From sequence record MZ475893.1: DNA of 64,000 nt; one strand, 5' to 3'. This document shows, in pieces, positions 10,353 through 47,308 of the stretch. The notes under the pieces are model-generated. The model saw only the letters and a list, made by a program, of their open reading frames with translations. It did no database searches and was not told the origin of the DNA. The position numbers and the translations under genes were made by a program. Each line of letters begins with the position of its first letter. The first letter of the stretch is position 1.

Positions 10353-10398
10353 AGTTGCGAGCGCATTGCTCAATACAATCATGCTGAGGAGCATAACA

Positions 10399-10740
10399 AT
10401 GAACGCATCTACTTTCGATTTCTCTATCATCTGCACCGAGAGCTTCAACATTAACGAGCTGAACAAAATCGCCGTTGAGCTGAACAAGCTGATCACCAAC
10501 TCGCAGATCAAAATTGAAGCCGTAGAGATTGATGATGAAGGCGCCGAGTGTATTCTTCTGGCTGTCGGTCTTGATGAAGACGGCGAAGAGACTGGCGAGA
10601 ACGGCTACTCCCTGCATCTGGACAACGGCGACTATCAGATCGTGTATCTCGGCGTGCCACATCCTGACTTCGATAAGCACGAACTTGCGACCAGCGACTT
10701 TGAGTTGTTCATCAAATCAGTGAACGGCCTTGAGTTCTAA
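10399..10740 (+). CDS. acidic hypothetical protein
   Basis: SD in hairpin ATGCT-GAGG-AGCAT; ATG 10399. Confidence 0.8.
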   Translation: MNASTFDFSIICTESFNINELNKIAVELNKLITNSQIKIEAVEIDDEGAECILLAVGLDEDGEETGENGYSLHLDNGDYQIVYLGVPHPDFDKHELATSDFELFIKSVNGLEF

Positions 10741-10793
10741 GCATTAATCTGGCAGAAATCGCCGTTGTGTTTAGACGCTCAACGGCATACTAT
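10741..10793 (+). promoter_or_regulatory. box promoter P2
   Basis: GCATTAATCTGGCAGAAAT-28 nt-TACTAT; TTGTGT 17 nt upstream of -10. Confidence 0.7.
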
Positions 10794-10842
10794 TATGTCT
10801 CTAGCGCAATGACGCGCTACAACAACGAAAGAGAGAAACAAC

Positions 10843-11097
10843 ATGAGCGAAGACGTTAAAGTAACAATCGACTTAGTAGCTGACTTTGTATCACGCACCG
10901 AAGTTGTGTTTGAAGACGGTCAATCATCTAATGACTGGCTCGCGCCGTATGATCTGCGCCTGAACGTAACTGAGCCTCAAGGGCCGAACGGCTACCCCGA
11001 AGTTGAAATCGTCGGCCAGCGCGATAACGTCTTGCGCTTCTTTGATGAGCAGATGCCTGACAGCGACATTACAGAAGACTCGCTTGAATCTGCATAA
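10843..11097 (+). CDS. hypothetical protein (84 aa)
   Basis: First ORF after P2. Confidence 0.8.
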   Translation: MSEDVKVTIDLVADFVSRTEVVFEDGQSSNDWLAPYDLRLNVTEPQGPNGYPEVEIVGQRDNVLRFFDEQMPDSDITEDSLESA

Positions 11098-11112
11098 GCA
11101 ACAAACAACACT

Positions 11113-11140
11113 GTGGCGTTACGGCGCCACTTTTCTATTT
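11113..11140 (+). terminator. intrinsic terminator
   Basis: GTGGCGT-TACG-GCGCCAC-TTTTCTATTT. Confidence 0.75.
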
Positions 11141-11156
11141 CTGATCTGAGGTCAAT

Positions 11157-11696
11157 ATGAAACAAAAATTCTTATTCTTGCGCATGAGCCGACACGAGCT
11201 GAATCAGCATTTGTTTTTACTTCGTGGCATGAGCCGTGAGCGTCTTGAATCATTTACTGGCATTATCGCCGTTGTCAAAGACGATACGACGATGGCGAAC
11301 ATCGATGATACTGACCTGTATTATTTCAGCGAAGTAACAGCCGAAGAGACAACATCAGAGACGCAACAAACCTGGTGGAACCTGATTCATTACTACGACA
11401 ATCAGATTGCTATCGGCTCACTCCCACGCATAGAGCCGCTGCTGCCTGACGATTTAGTTGAGCGCATCAAAACAACTCGCAGCAATCGCTTCTACTACGA
11501 GTTCGATACGCAAATGCCAGAAGTGTTGGCCACTGTTGATCTTGACCTACACTTCTTGCCGTCTGCCGCTCAGCCTCGTGTGAAGAAGCCTAAAGAAGAA
11601 CAGCCAGAAGTTAATCCCCTGGCCGCATACACAGTCGAACAACTGTGTGCCGAACTGCGTACTCGCCTGAGTGCAAAAATCACTATCGAATTTTAA
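11157..11696 (+). CDS. hypothetical protein
   Basis: GAGG RBS; 179 aa. Confidence 0.75.
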   Translation: MKQKFLFLRMSRHELNQHLFLLRGMSRERLESFTGIIAVVKDDTTMANIDDTDLYYFSEVTAEETTSETQQTWWNLIHYYDNQIAIGSLPRIEPLLPDDLVERIKTTRSNRFYYEFDTQMPEVLATVDLDLHFLPSAAQPRVKKPKEEQPEVNPLAAYTVEQLCAELRTRLSAKITIEF

Positions 11697-11713
11697 TCAA
11701 CTAGCACAGGGAC

Positions 11714-12343
11714 GTGCCTCTAACTGAGATCAAAACTATGTTCACCAAAGCATTCTTCTTCAAAACTAACTACTCTGTATTGGCCGAAGGTGAGTTCGCG
11801 CTGCCTGTTGACTCACTGACCTCTCTCGTCAACTCGCGTATTTTCATCTGCATCACAGAAGACAACCTGCGCTTCGCACTGACCAACATCACTGTGCAGC
11901 CGATTCGCAATGGCTTCTTGCGCGTTGGCTTCGAGCCGAAGACTGACGTGAATGCAATCACTACTCCAATCATCACGCCTAAAACGATGTGGAGCGAATA
12001 TGATTTTGATGCGTGCAGTGTTGAAAACATCCCGTCATTTAATATCAGTACGCATGAAGACAAGAACAACGAACAACTGATTGCACTGTCATATGACCTT
12101 CGTATGGCTCTCATGCATTATCGTGAAGGCATGTACTGCGTGACCGACATCGTTTTGCGCCTGCATGAGCATGGCATCTTTGTCGTAGATATTGATCAGA
12201 ATCTCAAGGTTGCTCTCTCGCCTATCGCCGTGCTTAGCGAACGACCTACACATGCGGTCAGTCTGAGTAAAGACAACGGTGTGCTGTCTCGCATTGATGA
12301 CTTCGAACTGCCTGATCTCGCCAAACTGATCGTCCTACTGTAA
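11714..12343 (+). CDS. hypothetical protein
   Basis: GTG start (alternative ATG 11738). Confidence 0.75.
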   Translation: MPLTEIKTMFTKAFFFKTNYSVLAEGEFALPVDSLTSLVNSRIFICITEDNLRFALTNITVQPIRNGFLRVGFEPKTDVNAITTPIITPKTMWSEYDFDACSVENIPSFNISTHEDKNNEQLIALSYDLRMALMHYREGMYCVTDIVLRLHEHGIFVVDIDQNLKVALSPIAVLSERPTHAVSLSKDNGVLSRIDDFELPDLAKLIVLL

Positions 12344-12355
12344 ACAAACAACTCT

Positions 12356-12380: not shown

Positions 12381-12395
12381 GCTTTGGAGAATACC

Positions 12396-12656: not shown

Positions 12657-12657
12657 C

Positions 12658-14699: not shown

Positions 14700-14998
14700 T
14701 CTACGAATGGGTCCACGACCTTGAAGGTAACGAAAGTCAGAATCTGCCTATCTTGCCTCCAGACATTTATGCGTATGTGCGCGATGCCGTCACTGGCGCA
14801 CGTACTCCAATCAACTTTGAAGGCCGCACCGAGTTACAGCGTCAAGACAAGAAAGTCATAGGCGTTGTCTATTGGTCTAATCGAGCTAATCTGATTTCAT
14901 GGACGGGCGTCGAGCGCTTTCGTTTTACGCTGTATGTAGTACGCGCCTCACGTAAGTCAAATGAGCAACAGGAGGAAGCTCAAGTCTGCACTAATTAG
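14687..14998 (+). CDS. hypothetical protein
   Basis: Overlaps upstream stop. Confidence 0.65.
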   Translation: MGDIIYEWVHDLEGNESQNLPILPPDIYAYVRDAVTGARTPINFEGRTELQRQDKKVIGVVYWSNRANLISWTGVERFRFTLYVVRASRKSNEQQEEAQVCTN

Positions 14999-15040
14999 GC
15001 TGAAATAGCTATCGCGCATAATACGCTCCTGTGCTATACT
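14988..15040 (+). promoter_or_regulatory. box promoter P3
   Basis: GCACTAATTAGGCTGAAAT-28 nt-TATACT with TG extension. Confidence 0.7.
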
Positions 15041-15085
15041 CATAGACGAAGCAACACATAATCTATTCACGCTAAGGAGCGTATT

Positions 15086-15517
15086 ATGACTATCAACAAG
15101 TTTGACTTTCAAACACTGACTACCCCAGAACAATGGTCTTCCGCTGCTTGGGGTTTCTATCGTGACTTCGCAGATCGTTTGCGTGATACTATCGGCCGCG
15201 ATGATCTTTACTTCGACATTGAAGTTGATGGTGGCAGCGATAGCGACCAAGTTGCCGAAGAGATGGTCGATGATGGTGTGATTCATTTACTCATCTCGTA
15301 CAAAAACGAAGATGAAGATTTCATTAACGCCAAAGGCGTCTGGCTGTTCCAAGTCACTTACCCAACAGAAAGTGATATTGACGGTGAGTGGTCTAACCGC
15401 TTCGTGGTAGATGTGCAGACCGTTGATATGGAAATCTTAGAGCTGGTGGACTTTGATAACGGCCACCCACGTTTGCTTGAAGATATTGCAGCGCGTGTTA
15501 ATCACTGGTTAGTGTAA
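15086..15517 (+). CDS. acidic hypothetical protein
   Basis: SD hairpin ACGCT-AAGG-AGCGT. Confidence 0.8.
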   Translation: MTINKFDFQTLTTPEQWSSAAWGFYRDFADRLRDTIGRDDLYFDIEVDGGSDSDQVAEEMVDDGVIHLLISYKNEDEDFINAKGVWLFQVTYPTESDIDGEWSNRFVVDVQTVDMEILELVDFDNGHPRLLEDIAARVNHWLV

Positions 15518-15524
15518 TTGCTTG

Positions 15525-15546
15525 CGGGTCTTTTACGAAGGGCCCG
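15525..15546 (+). terminator. TACG-loop hairpin without U-tract
   Basis: CGGGTCTTT-TACG-AAGGGCCCG. Confidence 0.45.
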
Positions 15547-15582
15547 TCGTCAACAACACAAACCTGTTCTGAGGAGAACAAC

Positions 15583-15900
15583 ATGTCATCATCTACTGAA
15601 TTTCATTTCATCTTTCCAGAGTCAACCACTCTTATCGTTACTGTGGGTAACGGCATCGTCCCTGAGTATATGGGCATCCCTGCTAATCAAGAAACCCACC
15701 TGACGGGTGAGACTGCATTCAACTTTATGCAGAACTCTAACATCGTGGGCGTTATGAATCGTTTTGATCAGTCGCTTCTCAATCTGCTTATTGATCGCCA
15801 TGAGCAGAACGAAGAAGAGGAGAGTGCGCTGCGCCAAGCACACATGCAGAAGCACACGAAGAACTTCGGCGTGTATCTGCTGATTAAACATCACCGCTAA
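15583..15900 (+). CDS. hypothetical protein
   Basis: SD hairpin TGTTCT-GAGG-AGAACA. Confidence 0.8.
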   Translation: MSSSTEFHFIFPESTTLIVTVGNGIVPEYMGIPANQETHLTGETAFNFMQNSNIVGVMNRFDQSLLNLLIDRHEQNEEEESALRQAHMQKHTKNFGVYLLIKHHR

Positions 15901-15965
15901 GATTTGTGAAGGGCATTCGTTGCTGAGTGCTCTTTGAAAATCAACCCTGTTCTGAGGAGAACAAT

Positions 15966-19149: not shown

Positions 19150-19356
19150 ATGAAAGACATTGTGCTACACACAGCCCTTTTATTGACCATGATCGTTGTT
19201 AGCTTTTTGACTCTTCACTACATTCGCTTCCTGAGTCTGGGCTACTATATGCTGATCACTATGACAGCATTCGTACTGGCCGTGTATGCGTGCAAGCGTC
19301 TCGCATCTGCTGTCACTAAAAATCGTTTTAACAAAGTGAGAATCAATCGTGGCTAA
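19150..19356 (+). CDS. small membrane protein
   Basis: Two TM helices, basic C-terminus. Confidence 0.65.
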   Translation: MKDIVLHTALLLTMIVVSFLTLHYIRFLSLGYYMLITMTAFVLAVYACKRLASAVTKNRFNKVRINRG

Positions 19357-19894
19357 ATCTTTCGGTGTGTACCTGACGTTCATTCTGCGCCATCGCCCGC
19401 AAGACATTGGCATTGCAATGGACACCCAAGGCTGGGTATCAGTTCCAGACTTGCTCGAACGTGCTCAATACAAGAAGCAGCCAATCACGTTAGAGATGTT
19501 GCGTGAAGAAGTTGCTACTGATGGTAAAGGCCGCTTCCAGTTCAACGCTGCCCACTCGCGCATTCGTTGTGTGCAGGGACATTCAGTTGAGCATGTGATT
19601 CTTAACCTCAAGCCATACACGAATCACAATGACCCGCTGTATCACGGAACAGCCAGCAAGAACGTTGCGTCTATTCTTGCGCAGGGAATTCTTCGCGGTA
19701 AACGTAAACACGTTCACATCGCAACCAACACCGCTACTGCTAAGCAAGTTGGTCAGCGTCACGGTGAACCTGTTGTGTTTGAGATCGACACGTATGCCAT
19801 GATCGTTGCTGGCTATAAGTTCGAACAAGCCGAGAACGGTGTGATTCTTACCGAGCACGTTCCATCCCGATATCTAAGGTTGGTAGAGTTATGA
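19349..19894 (+). CDS. kptA: RNA 2'-phosphotransferase Tpt1/KptA
   Basis: LRHRP..MDTQGWV, IRCVQGHS, LYHGT, RKHVH, NGVILT motifs. Confidence 0.92.
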   Translation: MAKSFGVYLTFILRHRPQDIGIAMDTQGWVSVPDLLERAQYKKQPITLEMLREEVATDGKGRFQFNAAHSRIRCVQGHSVEHVILNLKPYTNHNDPLYHGTASKNVASILAQGILRGKRKHVHIATNTATAKQVGQRHGEPVVFEIDTYAMIVAGYKFEQAENGVILTEHVPSRYLRLVEL

Positions 19895-20298
19895 CTGAAC
19901 AACGAATGAGTTATTGCGGTTCACGTTACATCCGTACATCTTCTGGCAGGTGGTATTTGCTTTTCGAACGAGCTGCCTGCTTGTGCATCAATCGTCATGG
20001 TACCCAGTACTGGCGAGCAGGTACGCAAGTGTGGAAGGATGTGTCTCTCTCAACTCGCGCCACTTTGGAGAACGAGTTTATCAGTCGTACCCGCAAAGAT
20101 TTCAAGGAGTCGAAGTCTGCGTACAACAGATGGGGCAAGGTGATTCGTACACTCATTCTAGGTGCAGGCACTAACGAGCATCTCCACGATTTAGCGTCGA
20201 TTCTTGAGTCGCTGAGACAGACGCATATAGGGCGCAAGCAACAGCAACTGCGCACTACATTGGATGAAATAGCTATTCAGTCGAGAACTACCCTGTGA
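19891..20298 (+). CDS. hypothetical protein
   Basis: Coupled ATGA start. Confidence 0.7.
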   Translation: MTEQRMSYCGSRYIRTSSGRWYLLFERAACLCINRHGTQYWRAGTQVWKDVSLSTRATLENEFISRTRKDFKESKSAYNRWGKVIRTLILGAGTNEHLHDLASILESLRQTHIGRKQQQLRTTLDEIAIQSRTTL

Positions 20299-20304
20299 TA
20301 TAAT
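20252..20304 (+). promoter_or_regulatory. box promoter P4
   Basis: GCACTACATTGGATGAAAT-28 nt-TATAAT with TG extension. Confidence 0.75.
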
Positions 20305-20355
20305 AGTAGCGAACGCTAAACAGTCTCGTTTAGCTACTTACATGAGGATATGTAT

Positions 20356-20457
20356 ATGATTAACAACTACTGCCCGTTTCGCGCTGTGATGTACCACGCT
20401 TCAATCATCCTTCTCGCCATTTGCTCTGGCGTTGTTTTAGCCCACGCACATTTCTGA
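20356..20457 (+). CDS. 33-aa hydrophobic peptide (below ORF-track cutoff)
   Basis: GAGGA 7 nt before ATG; MINNYCPFRAVMYHASIILLAICSGVVLAHAHF. Confidence 0.55.
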   Translation: MINNYCPFRAVMYHASIILLAICSGVVLAHAHF

Positions 20458-20470
20458 GGAGAATATTAAG

Positions 20471-22875: not shown

Positions 22876-23139
22876 ATGGCAGTAGGTTTCGCCAAAGATG
22901 ATGACGTGTCCAACACCGTCGAAACAAACGTGCTGAATGAAATCGACCGCGCTCGTTCTGAGTTGCGTGGCGCTGGTAGTTCGCACTGTATCAACCCTGA
23001 CTGTGGTGCAGAGATTCCACTCATGCGCCGCGTAGCAATGCCGAACGCTCGCTACTGCGTTAGCTGTCAAGCACACCATGACGGTACGCCTGCTGTTGGC
23101 TACAATCGTCGTGGTTCCAAAGATTCTCAACTGAGGTAG
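22876..23139 (+). CDS. ybiI: YbiI-like DksA/TraR C4 zinc-finger protein
   Basis: CINPDC..IPLMRR..P.ARYCVSCQ; C-terminus GYNRRGSKDSQLR matches YbiI as recalled. Confidence 0.88.
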   Translation: MAVGFAKDDDVSNTVETNVLNEIDRARSELRGAGSSHCINPDCGAEIPLMRRVAMPNARYCVSCQAHHDGTPAVGYNRRGSKDSQLR

Positions 23140-25752: not shown

Positions 25753-26733
25753 ATGCGTTTTGGTTTCGCCTGCAAACTGCTTGATGACAACGGTAAACAA
25801 CCGTACACGAACAAGAGCCTGAGCTATGCTCACTTCTCCAAGCTGTCTCAGACAGAGCAGCAAGAAAAGCTGGTGCTCGTCGTCACACACAATCTGACCT
25901 CGTTGCTTGAGATGATCAGACACGTTGGCCGTCTGCGCACCGACTTGCGCATGTTTCGAATCACAAGCGAATTACTTCCGCTATTCACGCACCCGATGGT
26001 AACGCGCATGTATCTCCAAACACACATGACCAAACTGACAGACACGATGTTGGCAACATGTGGTGCAGCGGCTAGACGTCTTGGTGTTCGACTGTCATTC
26101 CACCCTGGTCAGTTTACCGTGCTTGCGTCTGACCGACCCGACGTTATGCTCAACTCGATTAACGAAATGGAGTATCACGCCTACTGTGCGCAGGCTATGG
26201 GCTACGGTCGTAAGTTCCAAGATTTCAAAATCAACATTCATTTGAGTGGTCGTCGTGGTGCCACAGGTTTCAGAGACGCCTACTCTCGTCTAAGCGATCA
26301 TTGTCGCAAGATGATCACGGTAGAGAATGACGAGTACACTTCCTCGATCGAGGATTGTCTTGAGCTTGCCGACATTTGTCCTGTTGTTCTCGACATTCAC
26401 CATCACTGGGTAATGACTAACGAATACATTCAGCCGACCGATGATCGTGTTCAACGTGTCATTGACTCGTGGCGCGGCGTTCGTCCTGTTGCGCATTACT
26501 CTGTGTCACGCCCAGAGTTCATACCGTCTACGGGTCTGCCTGATCAGAACAAGCTAGAAGCAAAGTCTGCCTCGCTGCGTGCTCATTCTGACTACTACCA
26601 CAACGACAGCGTAAACGAGTGGGCCCTCAGCTTCGAGCAATTCGACCTGATGTGCGAGTCTAAAGCGAAGAATCTAGCACGCACGAAACTAGCCCTTTTT
26701 AAGGGCAACTCTGCACAAATATGGTCAAAATAA
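25753..26733 (+). CDS. uvsE: UV-damage endonuclease UvsE/UvdE
   Basis: RFGFAC, MFRITSELLP, RLSFHPGQFTVLAS, ENDE, LDIHHH, HYS motifs. Confidence 0.92.
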   Translation: MRFGFACKLLDDNGKQPYTNKSLSYAHFSKLSQTEQQEKLVLVVTHNLTSLLEMIRHVGRLRTDLRMFRITSELLPLFTHPMVTRMYLQTHMTKLTDTMLATCGAAARRLGVRLSFHPGQFTVLASDRPDVMLNSINEMEYHAYCAQAMGYGRKFQDFKINIHLSGRRGATGFRDAYSRLSDHCRKMITVENDEYTSSIEDCLELADICPVVLDIHHHWVMTNEYIQPTDDRVQRVIDSWRGVRPVAHYSVSRPEFIPSTGLPDQNKLEAKSASLRAHSDYYHNDSVNEWALSFEQFDLMCESKAKNLARTKLALFKGNSAQIWSK

Positions 26734-26766
26734 GGCTTGTTTTAGAAGGTGCCCCTATGATACACT
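26713..26766 (+). promoter_or_regulatory. box promoter P5
   Basis: GCACAAATATGGTCAAAAT-29 nt-TACACT with TG extension. Confidence 0.75.
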
Positions 26767-26817
26767 GATTACGAGCACTGTATGCTCGTTTCTACTGATT
26801 CAAGAGGATAAGACAAT

Positions 26818-28648: not shown

Positions 28649-28926
28649 TGCAGCACCGTCGTAAAGTAAAGGCCGAGTCAAAGCAACGTTCAATACCCGA
28701 AGACTGGCCTGTATTCAAAGACATGTTGCTGACGTTGCGCATCGCTGTACTCACGGACGAGAAACCTCACGCTAAACTGCGTGCGCTTGCTCTCCAATGG
28801 TATACAGATGGGAAGTATCGTAACCCTGTCTGTGATTCTGTTCTGCTTAGGTTGACCGCTGAGAAACGACCTAAGCAAACTCTTGATCAATTGATCACTC
28901 TCTATAACTTTCTTGAGGAAGAATAA
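28648..28926 (+). CDS. hypothetical protein
   Basis: TAATG coupling. Confidence 0.7.
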   Translation: MQHRRKVKAESKQRSIPEDWPVFKDMLLTLRIAVLTDEKPHAKLRALALQWYTDGKYRNPVCDSVLLRLTAEKRPKQTLDQLITLYNFLEEE

Positions 28927-30149: not shown

Positions 30150-30194
30150 CTGGACAAAACAGCGCTTCTTAACGAGGCGCTTTTCTGCTATAAT
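30142..30194 (+). promoter_or_regulatory. box promoter P6 with terminator hairpin in spacer
   Basis: ACACTTAACTGGACAAAAC-28 nt-TATAAT; spacer AGCGCTTC-TTAAC-GAGGCGCT-TTT. Confidence 0.75.
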
Positions 30195-30260
30195 AGCAGC
30201 TAGAGCACAAGCTCTCACGTTTGCATTTACTATACGTTAAATACGGGAACCTCACATATT

Positions 30261-30563
30261 ATGGCACGTAACATTTCACGCAAGAAAGCGCTCGACCTGA
30301 TGGCAAAAACTTACAACGAAAAACATCCAGAGTATTTGCCGCGCCTCATGAAAGAGGACATGAATGCGAAAGACCTGTTCGAATTCCGTGAAGATGTTGT
30401 AGCTCAAATTCAGGCAGGTTTGAATCCTGCGAAAGTTGTTGATGATATGATCGACAACGCAATACGCGTCACCACGATGCGCCGCCGTATGAGCAATGAT
30501 TATAATCCGAAAATCTCCGACGTTCTTACCGATGAACTGCGTGAGGAACTTCGTAAACTCTAA
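30261..30563 (+). CDS. hypothetical protein
   Basis: First ORF after P6. Confidence 0.8.
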   Translation: MARNISRKKALDLMAKTYNEKHPEYLPRLMKEDMNAKDLFEFREDVVAQIQAGLNPAKVVDDMIDNAIRVTTMRRRMSNDYNPKISDVLTDELREELRKL

Positions 30564-33059: not shown

Positions 33060-33740
33060 ATGACTATTCTTATTTCTAACCGCACCGACGAGGTGATTCG
33101 CCAACTCAACGTAGCTATCTGGTCAAGCGTTCTATTCGGACTCATTGTACTTGCATCAATTCTGGTGCAGCCGAATGCAACAGCCAGCGTCTCTACGGGC
33201 CCTGATAACGTTATCGATATGTCTTCAACAACTTCACTCGATCCCTCCAATCGTGTGGCAAGAGAATACAAGGAGATTGCAAAGACGCTAGTTGTGCAAG
33301 ACGAGCGAAGGCCCTCGCGTTCTGTTACGAGAGAGCGCCTCCGACAATTGTACTCGCATCTACCGCACCCCAATGATTTAGGCAGGCAGATTGATTTGGC
33401 CGCTGCAAAGTATGCAGTGGACGCAAAGCTGATTCTTTCCATTTGCGTTTCCGAGTCGCATCTTCGTGCTAAAGTCAGAAACAAGTCTGGTGCGACAGGC
33501 ATCTGCCAAGTAATGGCTAAGATGCATGGGCATTCAGCAAAAGACCTCCTCGATTATCGTATCAACATTGATGCGGCAACGAAGATAATTGCAGATCTTA
33601 ATAAACAGTGTCGTGGTCGTACTGCTTGTGTTATTCAAGCGTACAACACAGGCTGGGGAGCATATTCGAAGGGTGCCCGTGCACCGCAATACTTGGCTAA
33701 AGTTAGATCAGAGATGCGCAAGCACCCATCATCATCCTAA
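33060..33740 (+). CDS. lytic transglycosylase (SLT domain) with N-terminal TM anchor
   Basis: ILSICVSES (catalytic Glu), SGATGICQVM, AYNTG. Confidence 0.85.
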   Translation: MTILISNRTDEVIRQLNVAIWSSVLFGLIVLASILVQPNATASVSTGPDNVIDMSSTTSLDPSNRVAREYKEIAKTLVVQDERRPSRSVTRERLRQLYSHLPHPNDLGRQIDLAAAKYAVDAKLILSICVSESHLRAKVRNKSGATGICQVMAKMHGHSAKDLLDYRINIDAATKIIADLNKQCRGRTACVIQAYNTGWGAYSKGARAPQYLAKVRSEMRKHPSSS

Positions 33741-34445: not shown

Positions 34446-34471
34446 CTCGCTGAATTTTTAAGGAAATTCCA

Positions 34472-35617
34472 ATGACTAATTCATCTCTGCCTTTCGTTTC
34501 TTGGTTCGAACGTGACAACTACTTTGATGACATGCTTGAGCGCCTCGATCTCAAACGTCTCTGGGGCTATGTTGAAAAGAACAACGTGGTCAACAAGACT
34601 AAATACAATCTGCCTAACCTCACTGCTTACCACACTACCGAGCACATGAAAGAAGTTGCGTGCATCGCGTCCTCTCTACTGCACCGCGAGTCGAACCACG
34701 ACTGGCAGATTCGTCTGATGGAATATCCGTTAGTCGTCGCGTGCCTTTTCCACGATATGAATCACAGTCTGGGTAAATATACTGATGACGTGAACATCAA
34801 CCATGCGCTCGTTGCGTTTAATGACTATCTTAATAGCAAAGATGAGAATCAGGGTAACGACAAGCTGCTGTTTGAATATCGCGATCAGATCTGTGCGCTG
34901 ATTCGTTGCACCCAATTCCCGTTCCATGACTCACGCAAGCCAACTAACCTGATGGAGCGCTGCATTCGTGATGCGGATATTCTATACGGCCTGCAGGATG
35001 ACGCAATGCCTGCTGTTGTGATTGGTCTACTGGATGAAGTGAACGTTCGTTTGGCTCCAGAAAGCAAATACTCCACAGATCAGTGGGTGGCAGGTCGCAT
35101 TGAGTTCCTGTTGTCGTGTGAGATGTTCACCGAAACTGCTAACAAAATCTTCTGCGATGCTCTCAGCACCAACAGTCCAAACTATCACGGAAATGTGCTG
35201 CAATCTTTCCTTGAGATGAAAGTGCGGCTGATCGATGTTCGTGCAGGTAAGCTACGTGGTGGTGATGTTATCTGGACAGACACAGAGAACGACTCAACCT
35301 ATCGTCCACGCCAGATCAGAAACATCGGCAACGAAGCGCTGCCAGACGTTAACGTGTATTTCACTGACGGTCAGGCTTGTGGTTATCGTAGCGGTGAGAC
35401 CGTTCAGTTGCTGCCTAATACAGAGATGGTGAAGCTCGAAGACATTGTAGTAGGCGACATTATTCTTGAGCCTGCACAGGGTGAAGTGAAGCGCGATCTG
35501 CATCGCATCGTAAACATTGCTAAAGGTGGCCTGCACGAAAGCGTGCTCTATCTTGAAAATGGCGGTGTGTTTACGTCAGCGCCCAAAGGCCGTGTCTGTC
35601 GCGTAGTCAGCAAATAA
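34472..35617 (+). CDS. HD-domain metal-dependent phosphohydrolase with two small C-terminal repeats
   Basis: AYHTTEH, LFHDMNH, IRDADI. Confidence 0.8.
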   Translation: MTNSSLPFVSWFERDNYFDDMLERLDLKRLWGYVEKNNVVNKTKYNLPNLTAYHTTEHMKEVACIASSLLHRESNHDWQIRLMEYPLVVACLFHDMNHSLGKYTDDVNINHALVAFNDYLNSKDENQGNDKLLFEYRDQICALIRCTQFPFHDSRKPTNLMERCIRDADILYGLQDDAMPAVVIGLLDEVNVRLAPESKYSTDQWVAGRIEFLLSCEMFTETANKIFCDALSTNSPNYHGNVLQSFLEMKVRLIDVRAGKLRGGDVIWTDTENDSTYRPRQIRNIGNEALPDVNVYFTDGQACGYRSGETVQLLPNTEMVKLEDIVVGDIILEPAQGEVKRDLHRIVNIAKGGLHESVLYLENGGVFTSAPKGRVCRVVSK

Positions 35618-35662
35618 CTGGACGAAATAAGGCTACTCTGCTTAGGCTGCTTATGCTATAAT
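35610..35662 (+). promoter_or_regulatory. box promoter P7
   Basis: GCAAATAACTGGACGAAAT-28 nt-TATAAT with TG extension. Confidence 0.75.
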
Positions 35663-35704
35663 ATGCGTGAGCAGTCTTTTAACTTATTCTCAAGGGAGAA
35701 ACGT

Positions 35705-39654: not shown

Positions 39655-39701
39655 ATCTGGACAAAATAGAGGTAGCTAGAAAAAGCTGCCCCTGATATAC
39701 T
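39649..39701 (+). promoter_or_regulatory. box promoter P8
   Basis: GCATAAATCTGGACAAAAT-28 nt-TATACT with TG extension. Confidence 0.8.
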
Positions 39702-39729
39702 AAAAGCGTAGCTTGTGCTGCGCTTTTTT
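39702..39729 (+). terminator. intrinsic terminator overlapping P8 start site
   Basis: AAAAGCGTAGC-TTGT-GCTGCGCTTTTTT. Confidence 0.7.
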
Positions 39730-39754
39730 ACTTTCTGTCTGAGGAGACAACTAA

Positions 39755-40906: not shown

Positions 40907-40991
40907 GTAGCGTAGACGTGAGGTATGCGCTATAAATTGAATGACGCGTTTTTGCTTGACTGTAAGGTAGCGGTATCTTACAGTCCTTTTT
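40907..40991 (+). ncRNA. candidate small RNA or attenuator leader (~85 nt)
   Basis: Between P9 and hairpin GACTGTAAG-10-CTTACAGTC-CTTTTT; start inferred from -10 position. Confidence 0.35.
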
Positions 40992-41109: not shown

Positions 41110-41931
41110 ATGCCAGAAGCACGCAAACCTCGCCCAGCTGATCGTTTCGCTAAAGCCCGTGCAGAGAAAAACTCACCGGAGCGTCAAGATGCGGCGGCCC
41201 AGCGCACGTATAAAGACACTCCGCCTAAATCTGTTCAGGTGAAACTGGATGCTGTGGCAGCTTCTAAGAAGAAAGTTTCTCGCGGTCCCAAGGCATCTCG
41301 TCCGCGTCAGTCGCCTGCTGTTGACGCATCGCCAAAGCCTCGCATTCGTGATGAGGAACGTGTGTACAATCTCGTACACATGATTCTCTCTGCGTGGAAA
41401 GCCGATGCAGAAAACGCGGCAGCAAGTGTGGGAATCGTTAAAGTGTCTCGGCGTAAGATTGAGGGTGCGTTACGCGATCTCAAGAATACGCGCTTTACTA
41501 AAATCCCAGGCTTAATCAATGACGTGCTTGTCTACAATGAACTGGTAGCTGAGTTCGGGCAGTGGGTGTACGTCGAGCACGACAGTCCTGATTGGATTTT
41601 TGTGCGCCTGCCTGAAAACAGCACGCCTGTGATTCGCGCTGACATTAGCTATGCCAAGACGGGTGAAACTTCCACGTCTGTTTCGACTTCTAGTGAAGTT
41701 CTGCTGAAAGATCTTAGCGAAGACGAAGAAGATGAGATCCCCGAGAATGTCGAGTACGACGATGCGGACGAGACTGACGAAGACGAAGAGGAGCCGTATG
41801 ACTACAGCGCTTGGTCTCTGCGTGACCTGCAGGATTATGCAAAGCGCTATGACTTCCTGCAGCCCGACACTGAGGGGTTCGATGATCGCGAGAAGTTGAT
41901 AGCAGCCATCGAGCTGGGGGAACAGCACTAA
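41110..41931 (+). CDS. basic N-terminus, acidic tract, C-terminal HeH-like motif
   Basis: AAGGA RBS; YSAWSLRDLQDYAKRYDFL...DREKLIAAI. Confidence 0.85.
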   Translation: MPEARKPRPADRFAKARAEKNSPERQDAAAQRTYKDTPPKSVQVKLDAVAASKKKVSRGPKASRPRQSPAVDASPKPRIRDEERVYNLVHMILSAWKADAENAAASVGIVKVSRRKIEGALRDLKNTRFTKIPGLINDVLVYNELVAEFGQWVYVEHDSPDWIFVRLPENSTPVIRADISYAKTGETSTSVSTSSEVLLKDLSEDEEDEIPENVEYDDADETDEDEEEPYDYSAWSLRDLQDYAKRYDFLQPDTEGFDDREKLIAAIELGEQH

Positions 41932-41991: not shown

Positions 41992-42046
41992 CGAATGCCT
42001 TGTAGTTTTTTGACTGTGAGTTACTTTCCGGCTCACAGTCCTTTTT
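41992..42046 (+). ncRNA. candidate small RNA (~55 nt)
   Basis: Between P10 and hairpin GACTGTGAG-11-CTCACAGTC-CTTTTT; no ORF before P11. Confidence 0.35.
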
Positions 42047-42104: not shown

Positions 42105-42157
42105 GCATAAATCTGGACAAAATCATGGTTGTATCAGAATGCTGCCTGTCATACACT
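42105..42157 (+). promoter_or_regulatory. box promoter P11
   Basis: GCATAAATCTGGACAAAAT-28 nt-TACACT. Confidence 0.75.
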
Positions 42158-42218
42158 TTAATGAGTCGAGCAATAGTGCTCGCAACAAACTAAATCCCAA
42201 TACTGAGGAGTATTACAC

Positions 42219-43829
42219 ATGGCACGTTTCGAAACTAACACTAATCTGGTTGGCAAAACTATCGTCCTGCTGAACGGCACCAAAGCGAAGATTGAAGACG
42301 CTATCGTTTCTGGCTACAAAGTGAAAGGCCAGACCAAGCGCATCGCAACCCGTGACGTCATCAAAGAGGGTGCGCACTTTAAAGAAATCGAGCGCACGCC
42401 GCTGAGCCAGCTGGAAGATACTGGCGAAGGTTATGTGAAGTTGAAAGAAGCCAAAGCCGCTTCTAAGAAAGCGCCTGCGAAAGACGCGAAAGCTACTGGC
42501 AAAAAAGCTGCGGCAAAAGACAAGCCTGCTAAGACCAGCAAAAAAGCTGCCGCTAAAGATAAGCCAGCGAAAGAGCAAGAGCCGAAAGTTCGTCGTAAGT
42601 CTGCGAAAGAGCAGGGCAACGATTATCAGGAACTCGCGCAGGCTATCATCAAAGGCGGTCGCCGTGCAGCGCCAGTTGAAATTGACAGCGTGGACGAAGC
42701 GCTGACCGATGCAATCGCTAAGCGTCTGACCGCTGTTGTCGAATCGTCTGAGATTGCGAAACTCGCCGCTGATAACAAAACGCCGATCGCTAACGCACTG
42801 ACCGTAACTTACGGTGCTGAGTTTGCGACTGATGCAAACGTTGTGCAGATTACGCTGAACCTGCAATACGCTAAGCCGACTGCCGTTGAGTCTGCCGCTC
42901 CTACTCTGGAGAATGCCGAAGCAATCGCAATGCGTGCTGCTAAAATGGCCGCACCTAAAGTGAGCGCTAAACTCAAGAAGGCGGTGCGTGAAGCGTTCGA
43001 CATTGAAACAGACCTTGAGCTGGGTACTGTGATTATGTCAGGCGATGATCAATTCGCTTACTACGGCGAAAGCGCGAAGCACGCTGGCAAAGCGCTGCTG
43101 TACGTTGTCGAAACTGACAAGTTCAAATCTGTCCTGGCCTCTACTCTGACCGACTACGAACTGCCTGCTGATGAAGAAGCTGAGGCAGAAGAAGCTGAGG
43201 CAGAAGAAGAAGAGGAAGAAGAAGAAGAGGAAGAAGAAGAAGAAGCCGCTGATGACTTCGACGACGAAGAGGAAGAAGATGCGGACGATGCAGATGATGC
43301 CGACGATGCTGATGGCGACGACGACGAATTCCAGTACGTTGCTGTAGGCGATGAACACTTTGCTCTGGTCAACAAAAAGATCACAGCCAAGTATCACGAT
43401 GCACTGGCTGAGCAATTCGGCGTTAGCACCGAAGCGCTGGTCCCAGGCTTAGTGTTGACCAACGGCGAGATCACTTTCGCTTATCTGGGCAACGATAGCA
43501 AAGGCGGCCTGCTCGTTATCGACCTCGACGACGATGCGGACGAAGACGACAACGTTCTGGTCTACCCGAAAGCAGACGTCAAATCACTGACCGACTTCTC
43601 TCCTGTGCTGGGTGATGCAGATGAAGAAGACGCAGACGATGCAGAAGAGACCGACGAAGAAGACGAAGATCAGGACGACGACTTCGAATTTGACGATGCG
43701 CCAACTGCTGACCTCGAAGACCTGTCTGACGATGAACTGCGTGACCGCGCTGTTGAGATGGGCCTGACCACTGTACGCAAAGCTGACAAAATGAACGCCA
43801 AGCAACTGCGTGCGCTGCTGTCTGAATAA
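42219..43829 (+). CDS. Lys/Ala linker plus highly acidic protein with C-terminal HeH-like motif
   Basis: SD hairpin AATACT-GAGG-AGTATT; poly-Glu/Asp tracts; biased codon usage. Confidence 0.9.
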   Translation: MARFETNTNLVGKTIVLLNGTKAKIEDAIVSGYKVKGQTKRIATRDVIKEGAHFKEIERTPLSQLEDTGEGYVKLKEAKAASKKAPAKDAKATGKKAAAKDKPAKTSKKAAAKDKPAKEQEPKVRRKSAKEQGNDYQELAQAIIKGGRRAAPVEIDSVDEALTDAIAKRLTAVVESSEIAKLAADNKTPIANALTVTYGAEFATDANVVQITLNLQYAKPTAVESAAPTLENAEAIAMRAAKMAAPKVSAKLKKAVREAFDIETDLELGTVIMSGDDQFAYYGESAKHAGKALLYVVETDKFKSVLASTLTDYELPADEEAEAEEAEAEEEEEEEEEEEEEEAADDFDDEEEEDADDADDADDADGDDDEFQYVAVGDEHFALVNKKITAKYHDALAEQFGVSTEALVPGLVLTNGEITFAYLGNDSKGGLLVIDLDDDADEDDNVLVYPKADVKSLTDFSPVLGDADEEDADDAEETDEEDEDQDDDFEFDDAPTADLEDLSDDELRDRAVEMGLTTVRKADKMNAKQLRALLSE

Positions 43830-43872: not shown

Positions 43873-43904
43873 ACTGACAACAAAGTTGATTGAGGAATCA
43901 CATT

Positions 43905-45167
43905 ATGTCAAACGCAAATAAAATTCTGCTTAACGCTCGTGTACGTCTGTCCACTGGCACAACTACTTTCATCAACAAGATTAACGCGAACGGCTACGGC
44001 ATCGATGCTAAGGGCCCGCAGATTTCTGTGAAGCGTCTTGTTATCGCAGGCAAAATGCTCAAAGAGCTGGCTGAGCCGCTGCCGCAAGGTGAATACGTTG
44101 TGCTGAACGGCGTCACTGTGAAACTGAACAAGCGCCAGCAACGTGAGCTTGCAGAGAAAACGCTCGACACTAAAGCGCTGCTGCCTGATTTAAGCAAGCT
44201 GACCTACGTTGACCCGCAGACAGGCAAAGTCACTGACGCAAAAGTGAAGCAGCCGAAAGCTGGCGCGAAAGCAAGTCTGAAAGCAACGCGTGAGCACAAC
44301 AAAGAGCCGCAGCGTAGTCGCAAACAGCACAAAGCTGAAACGAACGATCTCAAAGACAGTCTGGACATTATCGACGAACGCAAATCACCGAAAGCGTCTC
44401 TGATTGAACGTCTGGATGCAGCAATCGCCGAAGCGAAAACGAAAGCACGCCGTAAGCTGTTAGCCGAAACGTTCGACATGGACTGGGCTGATATTAAAAA
44501 GCATGGCGGTGCGGGTATCGTTAAGCAGCACGGCCGCAAGAACGCCCAGAAGTTTATTGATCGTCAGACAGTGCAGGTCGATAGCACAACGTTCATCAAA
44601 CAAATGCCAGCGCCGCTCAAGCGTCTTATTCAGGACACTGAGTTGCGTCTCAATCAAAAGCAGATTGAGCAAGTGCTCGGTGCGCTGGGGCTTGATACGC
44701 AATTCTACGCAGTCGCCGTACAAGAGCTGCTGGGCAAACTCAAACTGTCCATAGGCGGTCGCGTGATCGAAGGCGAAGTTGTTCGAAAGGAGAACACGCC
44801 GAAGCCAAAAAGGTTCGTACACGCTGAGGCGATATATGCAGACAAGAAAGAAGCCAAGCGCCGCGTAAGCAAAATGAAATATGCGCTGCTGATTCCGCCT
44901 AAGAAAGGTCTGCCTGCGTTGCGTATGCATCAAATCGATGCAAAGCAGTCACTCGCCGTTCTGCTGCACCTGAAGCCTGGGAACATCAAGCGTGGTCTGC
45001 TCGCGTATGACAACAAAGGCCGTGAGTATATGTATGTCGCTTGCGATATGACGGGCCCTGTGTTCATCGATAAAGATAGCAACGAGCTGGCGTTCACGTA
45101 TGCCAATCTGATCGATAACTTCAAACTCAAAGCGCAGCCTGTGTCTGAACTGGACGTGGCCGTATGA
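43905..45167 (+). CDS. basic protein, apparent paralogue of 42219 gene
   Basis: SD hairpin TGATT-GAGG-AATCA; shared N- and C-terminal patterns. Confidence 0.85.
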   Translation: MSNANKILLNARVRLSTGTTTFINKINANGYGIDAKGPQISVKRLVIAGKMLKELAEPLPQGEYVVLNGVTVKLNKRQQRELAEKTLDTKALLPDLSKLTYVDPQTGKVTDAKVKQPKAGAKASLKATREHNKEPQRSRKQHKAETNDLKDSLDIIDERKSPKASLIERLDAAIAEAKTKARRKLLAETFDMDWADIKKHGGAGIVKQHGRKNAQKFIDRQTVQVDSTTFIKQMPAPLKRLIQDTELRLNQKQIEQVLGALGLDTQFYAVAVQELLGKLKLSIGGRVIEGEVVRKENTPKPKRFVHAEAIYADKKEAKRRVSKMKYALLIPPKKGLPALRMHQIDAKQSLAVLLHLKPGNIKRGLLAYDNKGREYMYVACDMTGPVFIDKDSNELAFTYANLIDNFKLKAQPVSELDVAV

Positions 45168-45550
45168 GAACTGAAATCATCGTAGCGGGAGTTCTCTCTC
45201 AACTTTACACGCGGCTGATTACGGCCGCTATAATGAAAGCGCATGTGTATTACTCAGACCTTGCGCCGGTGGTGTTCGGTGTGCAGCTTACCAAAGTCGG
45301 TAAGTCGCAGTATCAAGCGCTGTGGGATTTAGTAGCGCTGACGATGCAGATGGATCACGCACACGGCCGACCGCCTGTTGCTGCTCTGTATGTGTCTCGC
45401 GCTAATGCATCAAAACGACCGCCGCAAGCATTCTTCGCTGAATACGAGCGGCTAACTGGTAAGCGACTCAATGACGACGACTGGGAAGAGTTAGTCGATG
45501 AAGTATGGGCAGCTTACTCTCCACCAGAACTGTGTCAGGAGCCGACATGA
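45164..45550 (+). CDS. hypothetical protein, possible winged-helix fold
   Basis: YSDLA....GRPPVAALYVS...PQAFF pattern. Confidence 0.65.
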   Translation: MRTEIIVAGVLSQLYTRLITAAIMKAHVYYSDLAPVVFGVQLTKVGKSQYQALWDLVALTMQMDHAHGRPPVAALYVSRANASKRPPQAFFAEYERLTGKRLNDDDWEELVDEVWAAYSPPELCQEPT

Positions 45551-46005
45551 AGAAGTTGAAAGCCGTAAAGGTTAAAATTAGCCGCGGTGGTTATAAGCCT
45601 TCTTCTAAGGAAGAGGCAAAGAAGCTGGTGGCAGAGTTTCTGCTCGGTACCATCGGCATTAGCCCAACGCAAGTCAGTCAACAACTGCTGTTGAATATCA
45701 CGAACTACAACTATTTGACCTCTGTTGCGTATTCTGGACGTTCTACAGATTACAGCCAAGCGGCAGCGCACAAAACTGTAAAAGAACTAAATGAATTTTG
45801 TCGAAAGCATAAAATTCAACTGGGCTTGCTAATTATGCCCCACACGTCGGCGTCTGAATATGATGGTGACGTAATTGTTGCAATCCCGTGGGAGCATGTT
45901 AAGAACAATCCGCAAATCCAGTCTGCCGTTAATTCTCTGTTTGAATCGGTTGAAGCAGACGGCTACCCACAGTATGTGACTGATGCTAAAACAGTAGAGG
46001 GATAA
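45547..46005 (+). CDS. hypothetical protein
   Basis: AGGAG RBS. Confidence 0.75.
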   Translation: MKKLKAVKVKISRGGYKPSSKEEAKKLVAEFLLGTIGISPTQVSQQLLLNITNYNYLTSVAYSGRSTDYSQAAAHKTVKELNEFCRKHKIQLGLLIMPHTSASEYDGDVIVAIPWEHVKNNPQIQSAVNSLFESVEADGYPQYVTDAKTVEG

Positions 46006-46006
46006 G

Positions 46007-47287
46007 ATGTTCTACGACTATGTATTCAACTTCGACGAGCGCCAGACGCTACTGTCGTTAGCGGAATCCAAGTATCTTCTTAAACGGGACATTCCCGAGT
46101 ATCTTAAAAAGTCCAAACACGCAATTGAGATTCGTCACACTGTGACCAATCGTGGACGCGAGCGCCGCTCAGGAACAATAACAACTCCTATCGTGCCGCG
46201 TATTCACACCCGTGATGTTATGCGCTTGCTTGATGATATTCGTGACAACGCGACTTACAGCTCCTGCCAAAGTCTCGCTGAACTGTTTGAATTGGGCTTG
46301 GGCGTTCCGCGCCAGAAAGATATTGCTACTTACCTTCATGCTTATTCGCGTGAGCACGATAAGAAAGGTATCGGTATCAAGTATATCCGCAAGCTGGTGG
46401 TTGATTATCATCGTAAGCACCGTCGTAGTATGGCGGGCAGTCGCTGGTTAATGCCTGCTGCTTACACGGCCAATCTGCTGAACATGCAGAACTTCATTCA
46501 TCTGAAAGAAGACGGCTACAAGGGTAAAGTCAAAACGCCAGACGGCATCCCTGTAGTCTTGATTTACCAGAGCACTGAATACGCGACTGGCGAGTTTACT
46601 CTGTGTGACGCATTCATGATTAGTCCGATGGGATATCCAATGCCGTTCGCTCAGATTGCGCTGCGTCCCGAGTTCAAGGCTGTGCCTAAAACGTTTTGCT
46701 CCCAAGCTCTGCGCGGCAAAGGCATGTACTCAATGGTTCTCGGTATGATTTACTGGGAGAAAGGTGATTCAGTCGAATTGACACGCGAAGTCATGGAGAT
46801 TGATGACAACCAGTATCTCACGTTGCTCGATGATGAACGTTATGCTGACCGCCGCTCTGATGAATATTCAGCGATGCTGGTCAAGCGTGAAGAGTTCCGT
46901 CGCAATCGTGACAAGTGGCAGTCAGTGATTGATAAGTACGGCCAGACAGTTCGAACTCTCAAGCCTGAGATTAGCGCTCGTCTTGATCGTGCTCGTCAGT
47001 TCTTCTACGACCGCTCCGAGTTCCTGAAAGAGTTCGAGTCTCAGGAGAAGCGTGAGAACACCCGCGCATCAAAACGTTTTGCTGTAGCGTCTGCGATGTT
47101 TGCTGCGATTGACTGTGGGACAATTGCTGATCGTCAGACCTACCTTGCAGTGAGCACAAAGATTGATAAAGTGCATGACATTCTCGGTAAGTGGGGATTC
47201 AACACTGTAAAATCTGTTAATGCTAGTTTGAAGAAGTCTCTTTTAACCTATGACGAATCAGGCGTATCTCGCGTCTGGTCACTATAA
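46007..47287 (+). CDS. hypothetical protein with one Sel1-like repeat
   Basis: LAELFELGLGVPRQKDIATYLH. Confidence 0.75.
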   Translation: MFYDYVFNFDERQTLLSLAESKYLLKRDIPEYLKKSKHAIEIRHTVTNRGRERRSGTITTPIVPRIHTRDVMRLLDDIRDNATYSSCQSLAELFELGLGVPRQKDIATYLHAYSREHDKKGIGIKYIRKLVVDYHRKHRRSMAGSRWLMPAAYTANLLNMQNFIHLKEDGYKGKVKTPDGIPVVLIYQSTEYATGEFTLCDAFMISPMGYPMPFAQIALRPEFKAVPKTFCSQALRGKGMYSMVLGMIYWEKGDSVELTREVMEIDDNQYLTLLDDERYADRRSDEYSAMLVKREEFRRNRDKWQSVIDKYGQTVRTLKPEISARLDRARQFFYDRSEFLKEFESQEKRENTRASKRFAVASAMFAAIDCGTIADRQTYLAVSTKIDKVHDILGKWGFNTVKSVNASLKKSLLTYDESGVSRVWSL

Positions 47288-47308
47288 CCCTTATCTGAGG
47301 AGATAAAC

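Follow-up and report, generated by a model that had tools for sequence, protein, structure and literature searches.

The window studied here, a stretch of 64,000 nucleotides, is the last 64 kb of the Erwinia amylovora jumbo phage pEa_SNUABM_45 (record MZ475893.1, positions 199,892-263,891 of 263,891 bp), and it contains a set of genes in which the core of the Shine-Dalgarno (SD) sequence forms the four-nucleotide loop of a short hairpin just upstream of the start codon. From comparisons made at the level of sequence we conclude that this hairpin is a real and selected RNA element, that it is tied to translation initiation, and that it is kept across at least seven phage lineages. The genome has 341 genes, with a large minus-strand block between two plus-strand arms of small genes, and the 96 annotated gene starts of the window are all on the plus strand and all labelled hypothetical. 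Gene starts were those of the deposited MZ475893.1 annotation, which is independent of the hairpin search, and genes are named by w and their window start position (w42219 is the gene starting at window 42219); the related phages SNUABM_5, SNUABM_7, SNUABM_30 and SNUABM_35 are shortened to SNU5, SNU7, SNU30 and SNU35. A preliminary description of the window had listed 11 such hairpins, and all 11 are present, each 2-7 nt before an annotated ATG, as follows.

10381..10394, plus strand: ATGCT-GAGG-AGCAT before w10399 (113 aa, function unknown); model score 24.1 bits; box promoter upstream.
15069..15082, plus strand: ACGCT-AAGG-AGCGT before w15086 (143 aa); predicted to fold with P ~0.9; box promoter upstream.
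15565..15580, plus strand: TGTTCT-GAGG-AGAACA before w15583 (105 aa, phrog_33843); covariance-model match; deletion joint relative to SNU7.
15948..15963, plus strand: TGTTCT-GAGG-AGAACA before w15966 (136 aa); covariance-model match.
20452..20463, plus strand: TTCT-GAGG-AGAA, a weak hairpin of 4 bp before the radical-SAM gene w20471; -1.5 kcal/mol.
28910..28923, plus strand: TTCTT-GAGG-AAGAA, a weak hairpin within the 3' end of the upstream gene and before w28929 (406 aa); -2.6 kcal/mol.
35687..35700, plus strand: TTCTC-AAGG-GAGAA before w35705 (224 aa); box promoter upstream; in the Snuvirus lineage only.
39736..39749, plus strand: TGTCT-GAGG-AGACA before w39755 (151 aa, phrog_38375); predicted to fold with P 0.96-0.98.
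42199..42214, plus strand: AATACT-GAGG-AGTATT before w42219 (536 aa, acidic, phrog_33433); the most widely conserved of all the instances.
43887..43900, plus strand: TGATT-GAGG-AATCA before w43905 (420 aa).
47291..47306, plus strand: TTATCT-GAGG-AGATAA before w47309 (1005 aa); the top model score, 25.7 bits.

Nine of these sites are solid and make up the core set, and those at 20452 and 28910 are weak, with AU-rich stems of 4-5 bp. No fold was predicted in context for the hairpin at 20452, which is missing from orthologues; it was matched at 20448 with 15.7 bits by the covariance model described below even though it lies outside the training set of that model. The hairpin at 28910 is not predicted to fold in context (P ~0.1) and is not conserved in orthologues, where a 4-bp CCTT/AAGG version was seen in SNU30 and AD1 only. 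Within the core set, the hairpins at 15565 and 15948 have to be read with the caveat that they are identical copies. Two hairpins that hold the SD in a loop of six nucleotides may be variant members of the same class. One, TACAT-GAGGAT-ATGTA at 20339..20354 on the plus strand, precedes a 33-aa open reading frame (ORF) at 20356 and is downstream of a box promoter at 20261 and a 5' stem-loop at 20315-20334, and the other, GAATTT-TTAAGG-AAATTC at 34452-34469, precedes a phosphohydrolase gene.

Compared with shuffled ribosome-binding site (RBS) regions, the hairpins are far above chance, 11 being found against 0.62 expected. Among the 51 RAGG cores located at -20 to -8 in the window, 11 have a perfect Watson-Crick stem of at least 4 bp, mostly of 5-6 bp, whereas 20,000 permutations of the 3' flanks among genes gave 0.62 such stems on average and 5 at most. 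The stem lengths at these cores are bimodal, either 0-3 or 5-6 bp, and tetraloop hairpins with loops other than RAGG occurred upstream of genes at chance level (9 seen, ~11 expected). A strong or AG-rich SD is not the cause of the stems because 24 other genes in the genome carry RAGGAG at the RBS with pairing of 3 bp or less, many of them as C-TAA-GGAG overlaps with a stop codon. When all 341 genes with their 173 RAGG cores were considered, 12 stems of at least 4 bp were found, 11 of them in a single stretch of 37 kb (10.4-47.3 kb of the window) and one consisting of a run of T/A. Hairpins with the SD in a loop of 5-8 nt occur at a few places elsewhere in the genome but the uniform tetraloop class does not, and the core 8-mer CTGAGGAG is clustered in the same genome arm in five genomes and is at control frequency elsewhere.

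Relatives were compared over their syntenic regions, namely, Alexandra, SNU35, SNU30 and AD1 (Alexandravirus), Y3 (Sasquatchvirus), Yoloswag (Yoloswagvirus), SNU5 (Rivsvirus), JA29 (Salmondvirus), SNU7 (Snuvirus) and a Yersinia phage, and for w42219 the comparison also took in IMG/VR loci. A covariance model built from 46 distinct hairpin instances was run over both strands of the whole genome and gave 10 matches with E<1, all of them at 10-47 kb of the window and on the plus strand, and in the syntenic regions of nine relatives 59 of 59 matches were on the coding strand. The same model had no match with E<=10 in E. coli K-12, but stricter filters were applied there and this result is supportive only. 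In a census of tetraloop hairpins with perfect stems of 5 bp or more that precede an ATG and its ORF, taken over the syntenic 50 kb of nine phages, the loop was GAGG 55 times and AAGG 5 times, and every other loop, GGAG and AGGA included, occurred at most twice. Stems are essentially 5-6 bp long, with position 6 paired in 37% of instances and positions 7-8 paired at or below chance. A DNA operator for a dimeric protein was rejected as an explanation because the arms vary around a fixed asymmetric centre and all matches are gene-oriented. Paralogy as the source of the shared hairpins was also ruled out, no paralogy having been detected among the hairpin genes.

That the structure looks selected, as the preliminary description put it, was borne out by this regional and strand specificity, by the dominance of the GAGG loop, and by orthologues, which keep the hairpin with compensating changes on both arms. 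Orthologues could be detected for seven of the core groups; of these 48 genes, with protein identities of 30-70%, 41 have retained a stem of 5 bp or more, and the non-coding sequence around the conserved hairpins is largely unalignable. The lineages that keep it include Alexandravirus, Sasquatchvirus, Yoloswagvirus, Rivsvirus, Salmondvirus and a Yersinia phage. These orthologue counts are the unbiased evidence because the pooled instances were selected for pairing; in that pooled set, chosen for pairing, the covariation score was 0.88 compared to 0.18 in shuffles, and all four types of Watson-Crick pair are represented at each of pair positions 3-5. One clear case of single-sided disruption was seen, a C.A mismatch in w15583 of SNU30. 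Between the window and the 98%-identical SNU7, substitutions (1/156 vs 4/440) are too few for a test of selection on this short timescale.

The stems found at the individual sites illustrate this. Orthologues of w15086 in Alexandra, SNU35 and Y3 keep ACGCT-GAGG-AGCGT. The modules of w15583 and w15966 are built on TGTTCT/AGAACA, TAAGCT/AGCTTA, TAGCT/AGCTA, TTAGCT/AGCTAA and ATGCT/AGCAT, the orthologue stems being TAAGCT, TAGCT or TTAGCT at the first gene and TAAGCT, ATGCT or TGTGCT at the second. The TGTCT/AGACA stem of w39755 is replaced by AGTCT/AGACT in Y3 and by CGTCT/AGACG in SNU5; the latter is also found on the upstream paralogues of w39755 in Yoloswag and SNU5, and the Yoloswag orthologue itself has CTGTCT/AGACGG, which includes one G.U pair. 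At w42219 the 5' arms form the series AATACT, TAATACT, TAATTCT and TATTTCT, with AATACT/AGTATT in the window, TAATTCT/AGAATTA in the Yersinia phage, and TATTTCT/AGAAATA around a UAGG or UUGG loop in the JA-like phages. The hairpin of w47309 is kept in 7 of 8 orthologues, and that of w43905 is kept in Alexandravirus and Y3 and is missing in Yoloswag and SNU5; a lower stem, UGACA/UGUCA, possibly extends the latter across the AUG. Since w42219 is the only gene with the hairpin in the JA-like phages and the Yersinia phage, its instance looks ancestral and the set looks to have expanded in the clades of Erwinia phages.

The hairpins also move between genes. Identical RBS modules of 19-25 nt are often found on neighbouring genes of one phage, and the assignment of stems to genes differs between phages. 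In the clearest case SNU7, which is 98% identical, has two genes where pEa_SNUABM_45 has one (window 15480-15640). The downstream gene of SNU7 is 100% identical to w15583 but has the TAAGCT stem, and upstream of it is a 30%-identical paralogue with the TGTTCT module. A three-way alignment placed the crossover within the shared AACATGTCATCAT, just after the hairpin. Thus, pEa_SNUABM_45 differs from SNU7 by the loss of one gene through recombination between two RBS modules, and the product of this deletion is the leader and TGTTCT hairpin of one paralogue fused to the next coding sequence. In Alexandra, a hairpin was split by an inserted gene, which took the 5' half. Such exchange of modules between genes, as read from the alignments, shows that the stem sequence is not gene-specific.

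What reads the hairpin is a separate matter. The only feature that is universal to all members of the family is RAGG, the SD core, and for this reason the ribosome is the only reader that is certain. Our tentative preference, which we hold at a little less than an even chance, is that the hairpins are cis-acting, compact, portable and self-insulating RBS modules that give context-independent initiation. According to this proposal a very strong SD, UGAGGAG (facing 3'-AUUCCUC-5' of 16S rRNA with one G.U), would be displayed at the top of an AU-rich hairpin of 5-6 bp with a predicted stability of -3 to -6 kcal/mol. The 5' arm would pair with the last two SD bases and the spacer, leaving the GAGG core single-stranded in the loop, and in this way the purine-rich RBS would be kept from base pairing elsewhere in the mRNA. 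The loop would serve as the nucleation site for the 30S subunit, which would then invade the stem through its top pairs, U.A and C.G, upon which the rest of this short stem would melt; any effect on translation, like nucleation on the loop and any additional trans-acting reader, is inferred. The net result would be efficient initiation that is independent of context, and this would explain why the module stands before unrelated genes and is exchanged by recombination.

The predicted energetics are in part consistent with this proposal. The hairpins range from -1.5 to -6.3 kcal/mol at 28 C and 7 of 11 are predicted to form with P >=0.85 in their local context; the SD core is predicted to be unpaired with P 0.9-0.99 in 6 of the 9 core sites. 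SD:anti-SD pairing is predicted at -8.7 kcal/mol in hairpin genes compared to -6.3 in other genes (P=3e-4). The predicted cost of unfolding the RBS is average but much less variable in hairpin genes (8.7+-0.9 vs 9.4+-2.8 in others). When the 5' arm was scrambled in silico, the probability that the four core bases are unpaired dropped from 0.77 to 0.35, the purine-rich RBS then finding other pairing partners. In these models the hairpin would fix the local fold with the core in the loop, neither hiding the RBS nor opening it globally. Two simpler ideas, that the hairpin makes the RBS more accessible or that it occludes it, were both ruled out, since the predicted accessibility equals that of other genes.

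Several points weigh against a purely cis-acting role. All energetic values are predictions, and a search of sequencing-run records turned up DNA and metagenome entries only and no RNA run. Hairpin genes do not differ from other genes in the predicted accessibility of the SD, of the AUG or of the whole RBS; at w10399 and w15086 the loop is predicted to be mostly paired when a longer context is folded. The hairpin also has to open because a closed loop of 4 nt cannot form the full SD helix. Insulation in cis does not demand a nearly exclusive GAGG loop or stems confined to 5-6 bp, nor would it have to be restricted to about 10 of 341 genes, in the same genome arm as one class of promoters. A loop and stem length so uniform, on so few genes, look like a regulon with a common reader.

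The promoter class in question was described as a box promoter, and the claim that several hairpin genes come first after one is correct for 5 of the 11 (10381, 15069, 35687, 39736 and 42199). This non-canonical, promoter-like module consists of the box (T/A)GGNYNAAAT, 28-29 nt, and a TG-extended TAtAaT that often has GCTGCC before it, and it is without a -35 element. There are eight box modules in the genome, all in the arm at 10-42 kb of the window, and five core hairpins lie 43-62 nt downstream of one. A sixth module precedes the 33-aa ORF with the hexaloop SD hairpin (20339-20354), and the remaining two, at genes w26818 and w30261, are not accompanied by an SD hairpin. In the leaders the order is the -10 element, a 5' stem-loop, an A/C-rich linker and the SD hairpin. 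The modules and leaders are as follows.

10308-10352, 14997-15040, 20261-20304, 26722-26766, 30151-30194, 35619-35662, 39658-39701 and 42114-42157: the eight box modules.
42114..42182, plus strand: leader of w42219, with box TGGACAAAAT at 42114-42123, -10 element TACACT at 42152-42157 and 5' stem-loop CGAGC-AATAGT-GCTCG at 42167-42182.
39658..39724, plus strand: leader of w39755, with box at 39658-39667, -10 element TATACT at 39696-39701 and a 5' stem-loop followed by a U-run at 39705-39724.
35619..35662, plus strand: box promoter of w35705, with box TGGACGAAAT and -10 element TATAAT at 35657-35662.
14997..15040, plus strand: box promoter of w15086, with box AGGCTGAAAT and -10 element TATACT at 15035-15040.
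10308..10371, plus strand: box promoter of w10399, with box AGGTCAAAAT, -10 element TATAAT at 10347-10352 and 5' stem-loop at 10359-10371.
42167-42182, 39705-39724, 10359-10371, 20315-20334, 26773-26787 and 30202-30215: 5' stem-loops directly after the -10 element.

The arms of the 5' stem-loops also covary in orthologues (CGAGC/GCTCG, GACGC/GCGTC, GGTGC/GCACC, TTGAGC/GCTCAA and CTCGGC/GCCGAG), and at w42219 the whole leader module, including its covarying 5' stem-loop, is kept in every lineage, JA29 and the Yersinia phage among them. The stem-loop at 39705-39724 was also called as a terminator. In the PaBG study (PMC7412058) this group of phages was reported to encode sigma70-like factors, and the box module may be read with a phage sigma factor or activator. 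The other core hairpins do not follow a box: those at 15565, 15948 and 43887 follow GC-rich terminator-like hairpins and that at 47291 follows a 22-nt intergenic spacer. Between 9500 and 49300 of the window, canonical sigma70 -35/-10-like sites are depleted (13-14 vs 20-22 in shuffles) and terminator-like hairpins are enriched about 2x (35-36 vs 17-20). Two nearly identical terminator-like hairpins, GACTGT.AG...CT.ACAGTC followed by CTTTTT, were noticed about 1 kb apart at 40958-40985 and 42012-42040, flanking w41110. Gene w30261 (30151-30263) has the box promoter and 5' stem-loop and no recognisable SD before its annotated ATG; its start may be mis-annotated or its initiation may be independent of an SD.

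The main rival proposal is that the hairpins are operators of a post-transcriptional regulon, at which a trans-acting factor would switch translation off or on during infection together with the box promoters. The factor could be a phage RNA-binding repressor, an SD-specific endoribonuclease like T4 RegB, or RsmA/CsrA of the host. Erwinia, Dickeya and Yersinia hosts have RsmA/CsrA. We regard such a regulon as possible and yet on the unlikely side. It would account for the uniform loop (GAGG in 55 of 60 RAGG tetraloops), for the narrow stem length and for confinement to the 37-kb arm in which all 8 box promoters are found, 5 or 6 of them upstream of an SD hairpin. GGAG runs across the loop-stem junction in about 75% of members, and the JA-like phages keep GG and AG fixed and let the first two loop bases vary. 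Moreover, in the lone S1-independent substrate of RegB the GGA is part of a loop and is followed by paired bases (PMC1702504), and CsrA favours short hairpins with GGA in the loop (PMC7366521). Against all this, the SD and its complement fully explain the conserved bases, and neither a RegB nor a CsrA homologue is present in the phage.

The two named candidates fared worse than the general idea, and of the earlier proposal that the hairpins are selected and belong to a CsrA/RsmA or RegB-like regulon, the first part stands on covariation and specificity and the second was supported by none of the tests. No homologue of CsrA (PF02599) was found in the phage genome and no match to RegB (PF10715) with E<=1 was found in its 263,891 bp. 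A site for CsrA or RsmA would not be expected to look like this: the loop contains the GG of the GGA triplet, whereas the A is engaged in the closing pair, U.A, in 41 of the 46 distinct instances, the ANGGA consensus fits only the AAGG-loop minority (5 of 60) and most instances read GAGGA, and in all five promoter-proximal leaders the stretch from the -10 element to the ATG includes just one GGA. In relatives, TGCC-AAGG-GGCA, AACAG-GAGG-CTGTT and ATAATGC-GAGG-GCATTAT are members with neither GGA nor GGAG. For a nuclease like RegB the GGAG count is mixed: GGAG is present at 8 of the 11 window sites, is shifted by a base at one more, and is missing at 43887, at 28910 and in several members in relatives. 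The 3' bases of the site are in the stem, so that the sites are structured, unlike RegB targets, and RegB is reportedly inhibited by structure (PMC1702504). Searches of the tested hairpin-gene products against Pfam, PHROG, the Atlas and PDB profiles found no RNA-binding or nuclease domain. A small RNA of the RNAIII type that pairs with the SD loops was ruled out because no clustered CCUC-loop hairpins were found. A more specific version is that a small gene set in PaBG/Alexandra-like jumbo phages is under two-layer control, by the box promoter and by an SD-tetraloop hairpin read by a phage RNA-binding protein or an SD endoribonuclease unrelated to RegB, this control being ancestral at w42219 and expanded in the Erwinia-phage clades; we consider this rather doubtful.

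The exchange of modules raises a different question, whether the palindromes act mainly at the DNA level as joints between gene cassettes, as in the PeSL cassettes of T4-type phages, with the RNA hairpin as a by-product. Genes bounded by hairpins have been gained or lost between phages that are 98% identical with the deletion joint right at the module, the insertion in Alexandra splits a hairpin, and identical 19-25-nt modules are on neighbouring genes. However, the mapped crossover is in the microhomology shared by the RBS, ATG and first codons and not in the palindrome, and recombination requires repeats and not inverted repeats with covarying arms. The strict gene orientation (59 of 59 on the coding strand), the fixed distance to the ATG and the SD as loop also speak against a DNA-level function, as does the fact that the best conserved instances (42199, 43887 and 47291) are isolated and not repeated. 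This explanation is therefore improbable.

Still less probable, and very unlikely, is that translation is gated by the transcript as in T4 e, soc, 49 and I-TevI, where the mechanism is established (PMC3014915), the hairpin blocking read-through transcripts and transcripts that start inside it being translated. Several hairpin genes do follow terminator-like hairpins and could be reached by read-through. But transcripts from the box promoters, which are 43-62 nt upstream, carry the complete hairpin; alignments of orthologues show no conserved motif resembling a promoter across the 5' arms; and the hairpins are weak, with the SD core in the loop and not in the helix. Least of all can the hairpins be ascribed to chance pairing between the pyrimidine-rich upstream and purine-rich downstream flanks of AG-rich RBSs: the 5' arms are indeed mostly pyrimidine-rich and the 3' arms purine-rich, C-TAA-GGAG stop-codon overlaps also produce CT..AG flanks, and 2 of the 11 sites (20452 and 28910) may be accidental, but for the nine core sites this explanation is refuted by the permutation test, the bimodal stem lengths, the regional confinement, the G-C, C-G and A-U pairs in both orientations at pair positions 3-5, and the conservation in orthologues with changes on both arms.

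The hairpin-gene products are mostly of unknown function, and the only domain match in them is the radical-SAM domain of w20471. The product of w39755, which is of the size of RegB, gave a confident structure prediction (pLDDT 88), and its family profile found no PDB relative by sequence. The product of w42219 (42219-43829) has long poly-Glu/Asp tracts of low complexity and a conserved C-terminal segment with weak SAP/Rho_N-like features, and that of w41110 (41110-41931) has a weak match to Ish1 (HeH); these possible nucleic-acid-binding motifs are leads only. The neighbouring gene w22876 has a DksA/TraR zinc finger (Pfam, 2e-10). Several genes annotated as hypothetical (8375-10213, 19349-19894, 22876-23139, 25753-26733, 33060-33740 and 34472-35617) have counterparts in relatives, and the named counterparts, of equal length and at a matching position, are an EPS depolymerase, an RNA 2'-phosphotransferase, a UvsE-like endonuclease, a transglycosylase and a phosphohydrolase.

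Structured RBSs are familiar, as are translational operators of phages. A hairpin family that is shared by several genes and has the SD core as a uniform covarying tetraloop is apparently undescribed: the Rfam 15 covariance models had no relevant match with E<=1 at 9000-49000 of the window, and no description was found in the literature searched. Covariation has preserved the element in at least seven phage lineages, whose hosts belong to three genera. If the cis-acting proposal is true, it would be a natural, portable and context-insulated RBS, with a bearing on how shuffled phage genes are expressed and on the design of synthetic RBSs, and if a trans-acting reader exists it would define a new phage post-transcriptional regulon in this jumbo-phage group. 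Either way, about 10 precise and mutable targets and eight promoters become available for the study of gene expression in phages under development against fire blight.

Among known systems, CsrA recognises GGA or ANGGA that a short hairpin displays unpaired in its apical loop, and a target usually has two such motifs, which one dimer can bridge (PMC7366521). The phage hairpins resemble CsrA/RsmA sites in being short, in overlapping the SD and in having GG in the apical loop, but they pair the A of GGA, mostly have a GAGG loop, have one motif per leader and include some members that are free of GGA. RegB cuts at GGAG within the SDs of early mRNAs, depends on an A-rich element 3' of the site for activation by S1, and is impeded by structure (PMC1702504). 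Its targets are likewise spread over many genes and centred on the SD, GGAG is present in most of the phage hairpins, and in the S1-independent substrate, too, GGA lies in a loop and the bases after it are paired; in contrast, RegB sites in nature lack structure and have the A-rich element, the phage is without a RegB homologue, and some of its hairpins are without GGAG. In T4 e, soc, 49 and I-TevI a hairpin at the RBS blocks translation and a late promoter in its 5' strand bypasses the block (PMC3014915). These too are small local hairpins at the initiation region of selected phage genes and are conserved in relatives, but there the SD and/or AUG is in the helix, whereas here the SD core is the loop and the AUG, 2-7 nt from the stem, is for the most part not included in the hairpin.

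The PeSL cassettes of T4-type phages, in which a terminator stem-loop is upstream of a canonical sigma70 promoter, mediate gene shuffling (PMC2839356, PMC4122927). They share with the modules described here a composite build (promoter, stem-loop, SD and ATG), a location at the borders of genes in plastic regions, and the mediation of indels, and indels of this type are seen between close relatives, at the SNU7 deletion joint with its extra hairpin-bounded gene and at the Alexandra insertion. The stem-loop of a PeSL, however, does not enclose the SD, whereas the box promoter of the phage is without a -35 element and its hairpin is downstream with the SD in the loop. The coat-protein hairpins of MS2, Qbeta and PP7 are translational operators of a single gene with a known protein partner and a loop that is not an SD. 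The translational operator of T4 gene 43 is also a hairpin at the RBS (PMC3014915). Like these operators of RNA phages and of T4 gene 43, the hairpin described here is a defined short RBS hairpin with a fixed loop size that is conserved by covariation, but each of those serves one gene and has a known partner, whereas the SD-loop element is common to about 10 genes of the phage.

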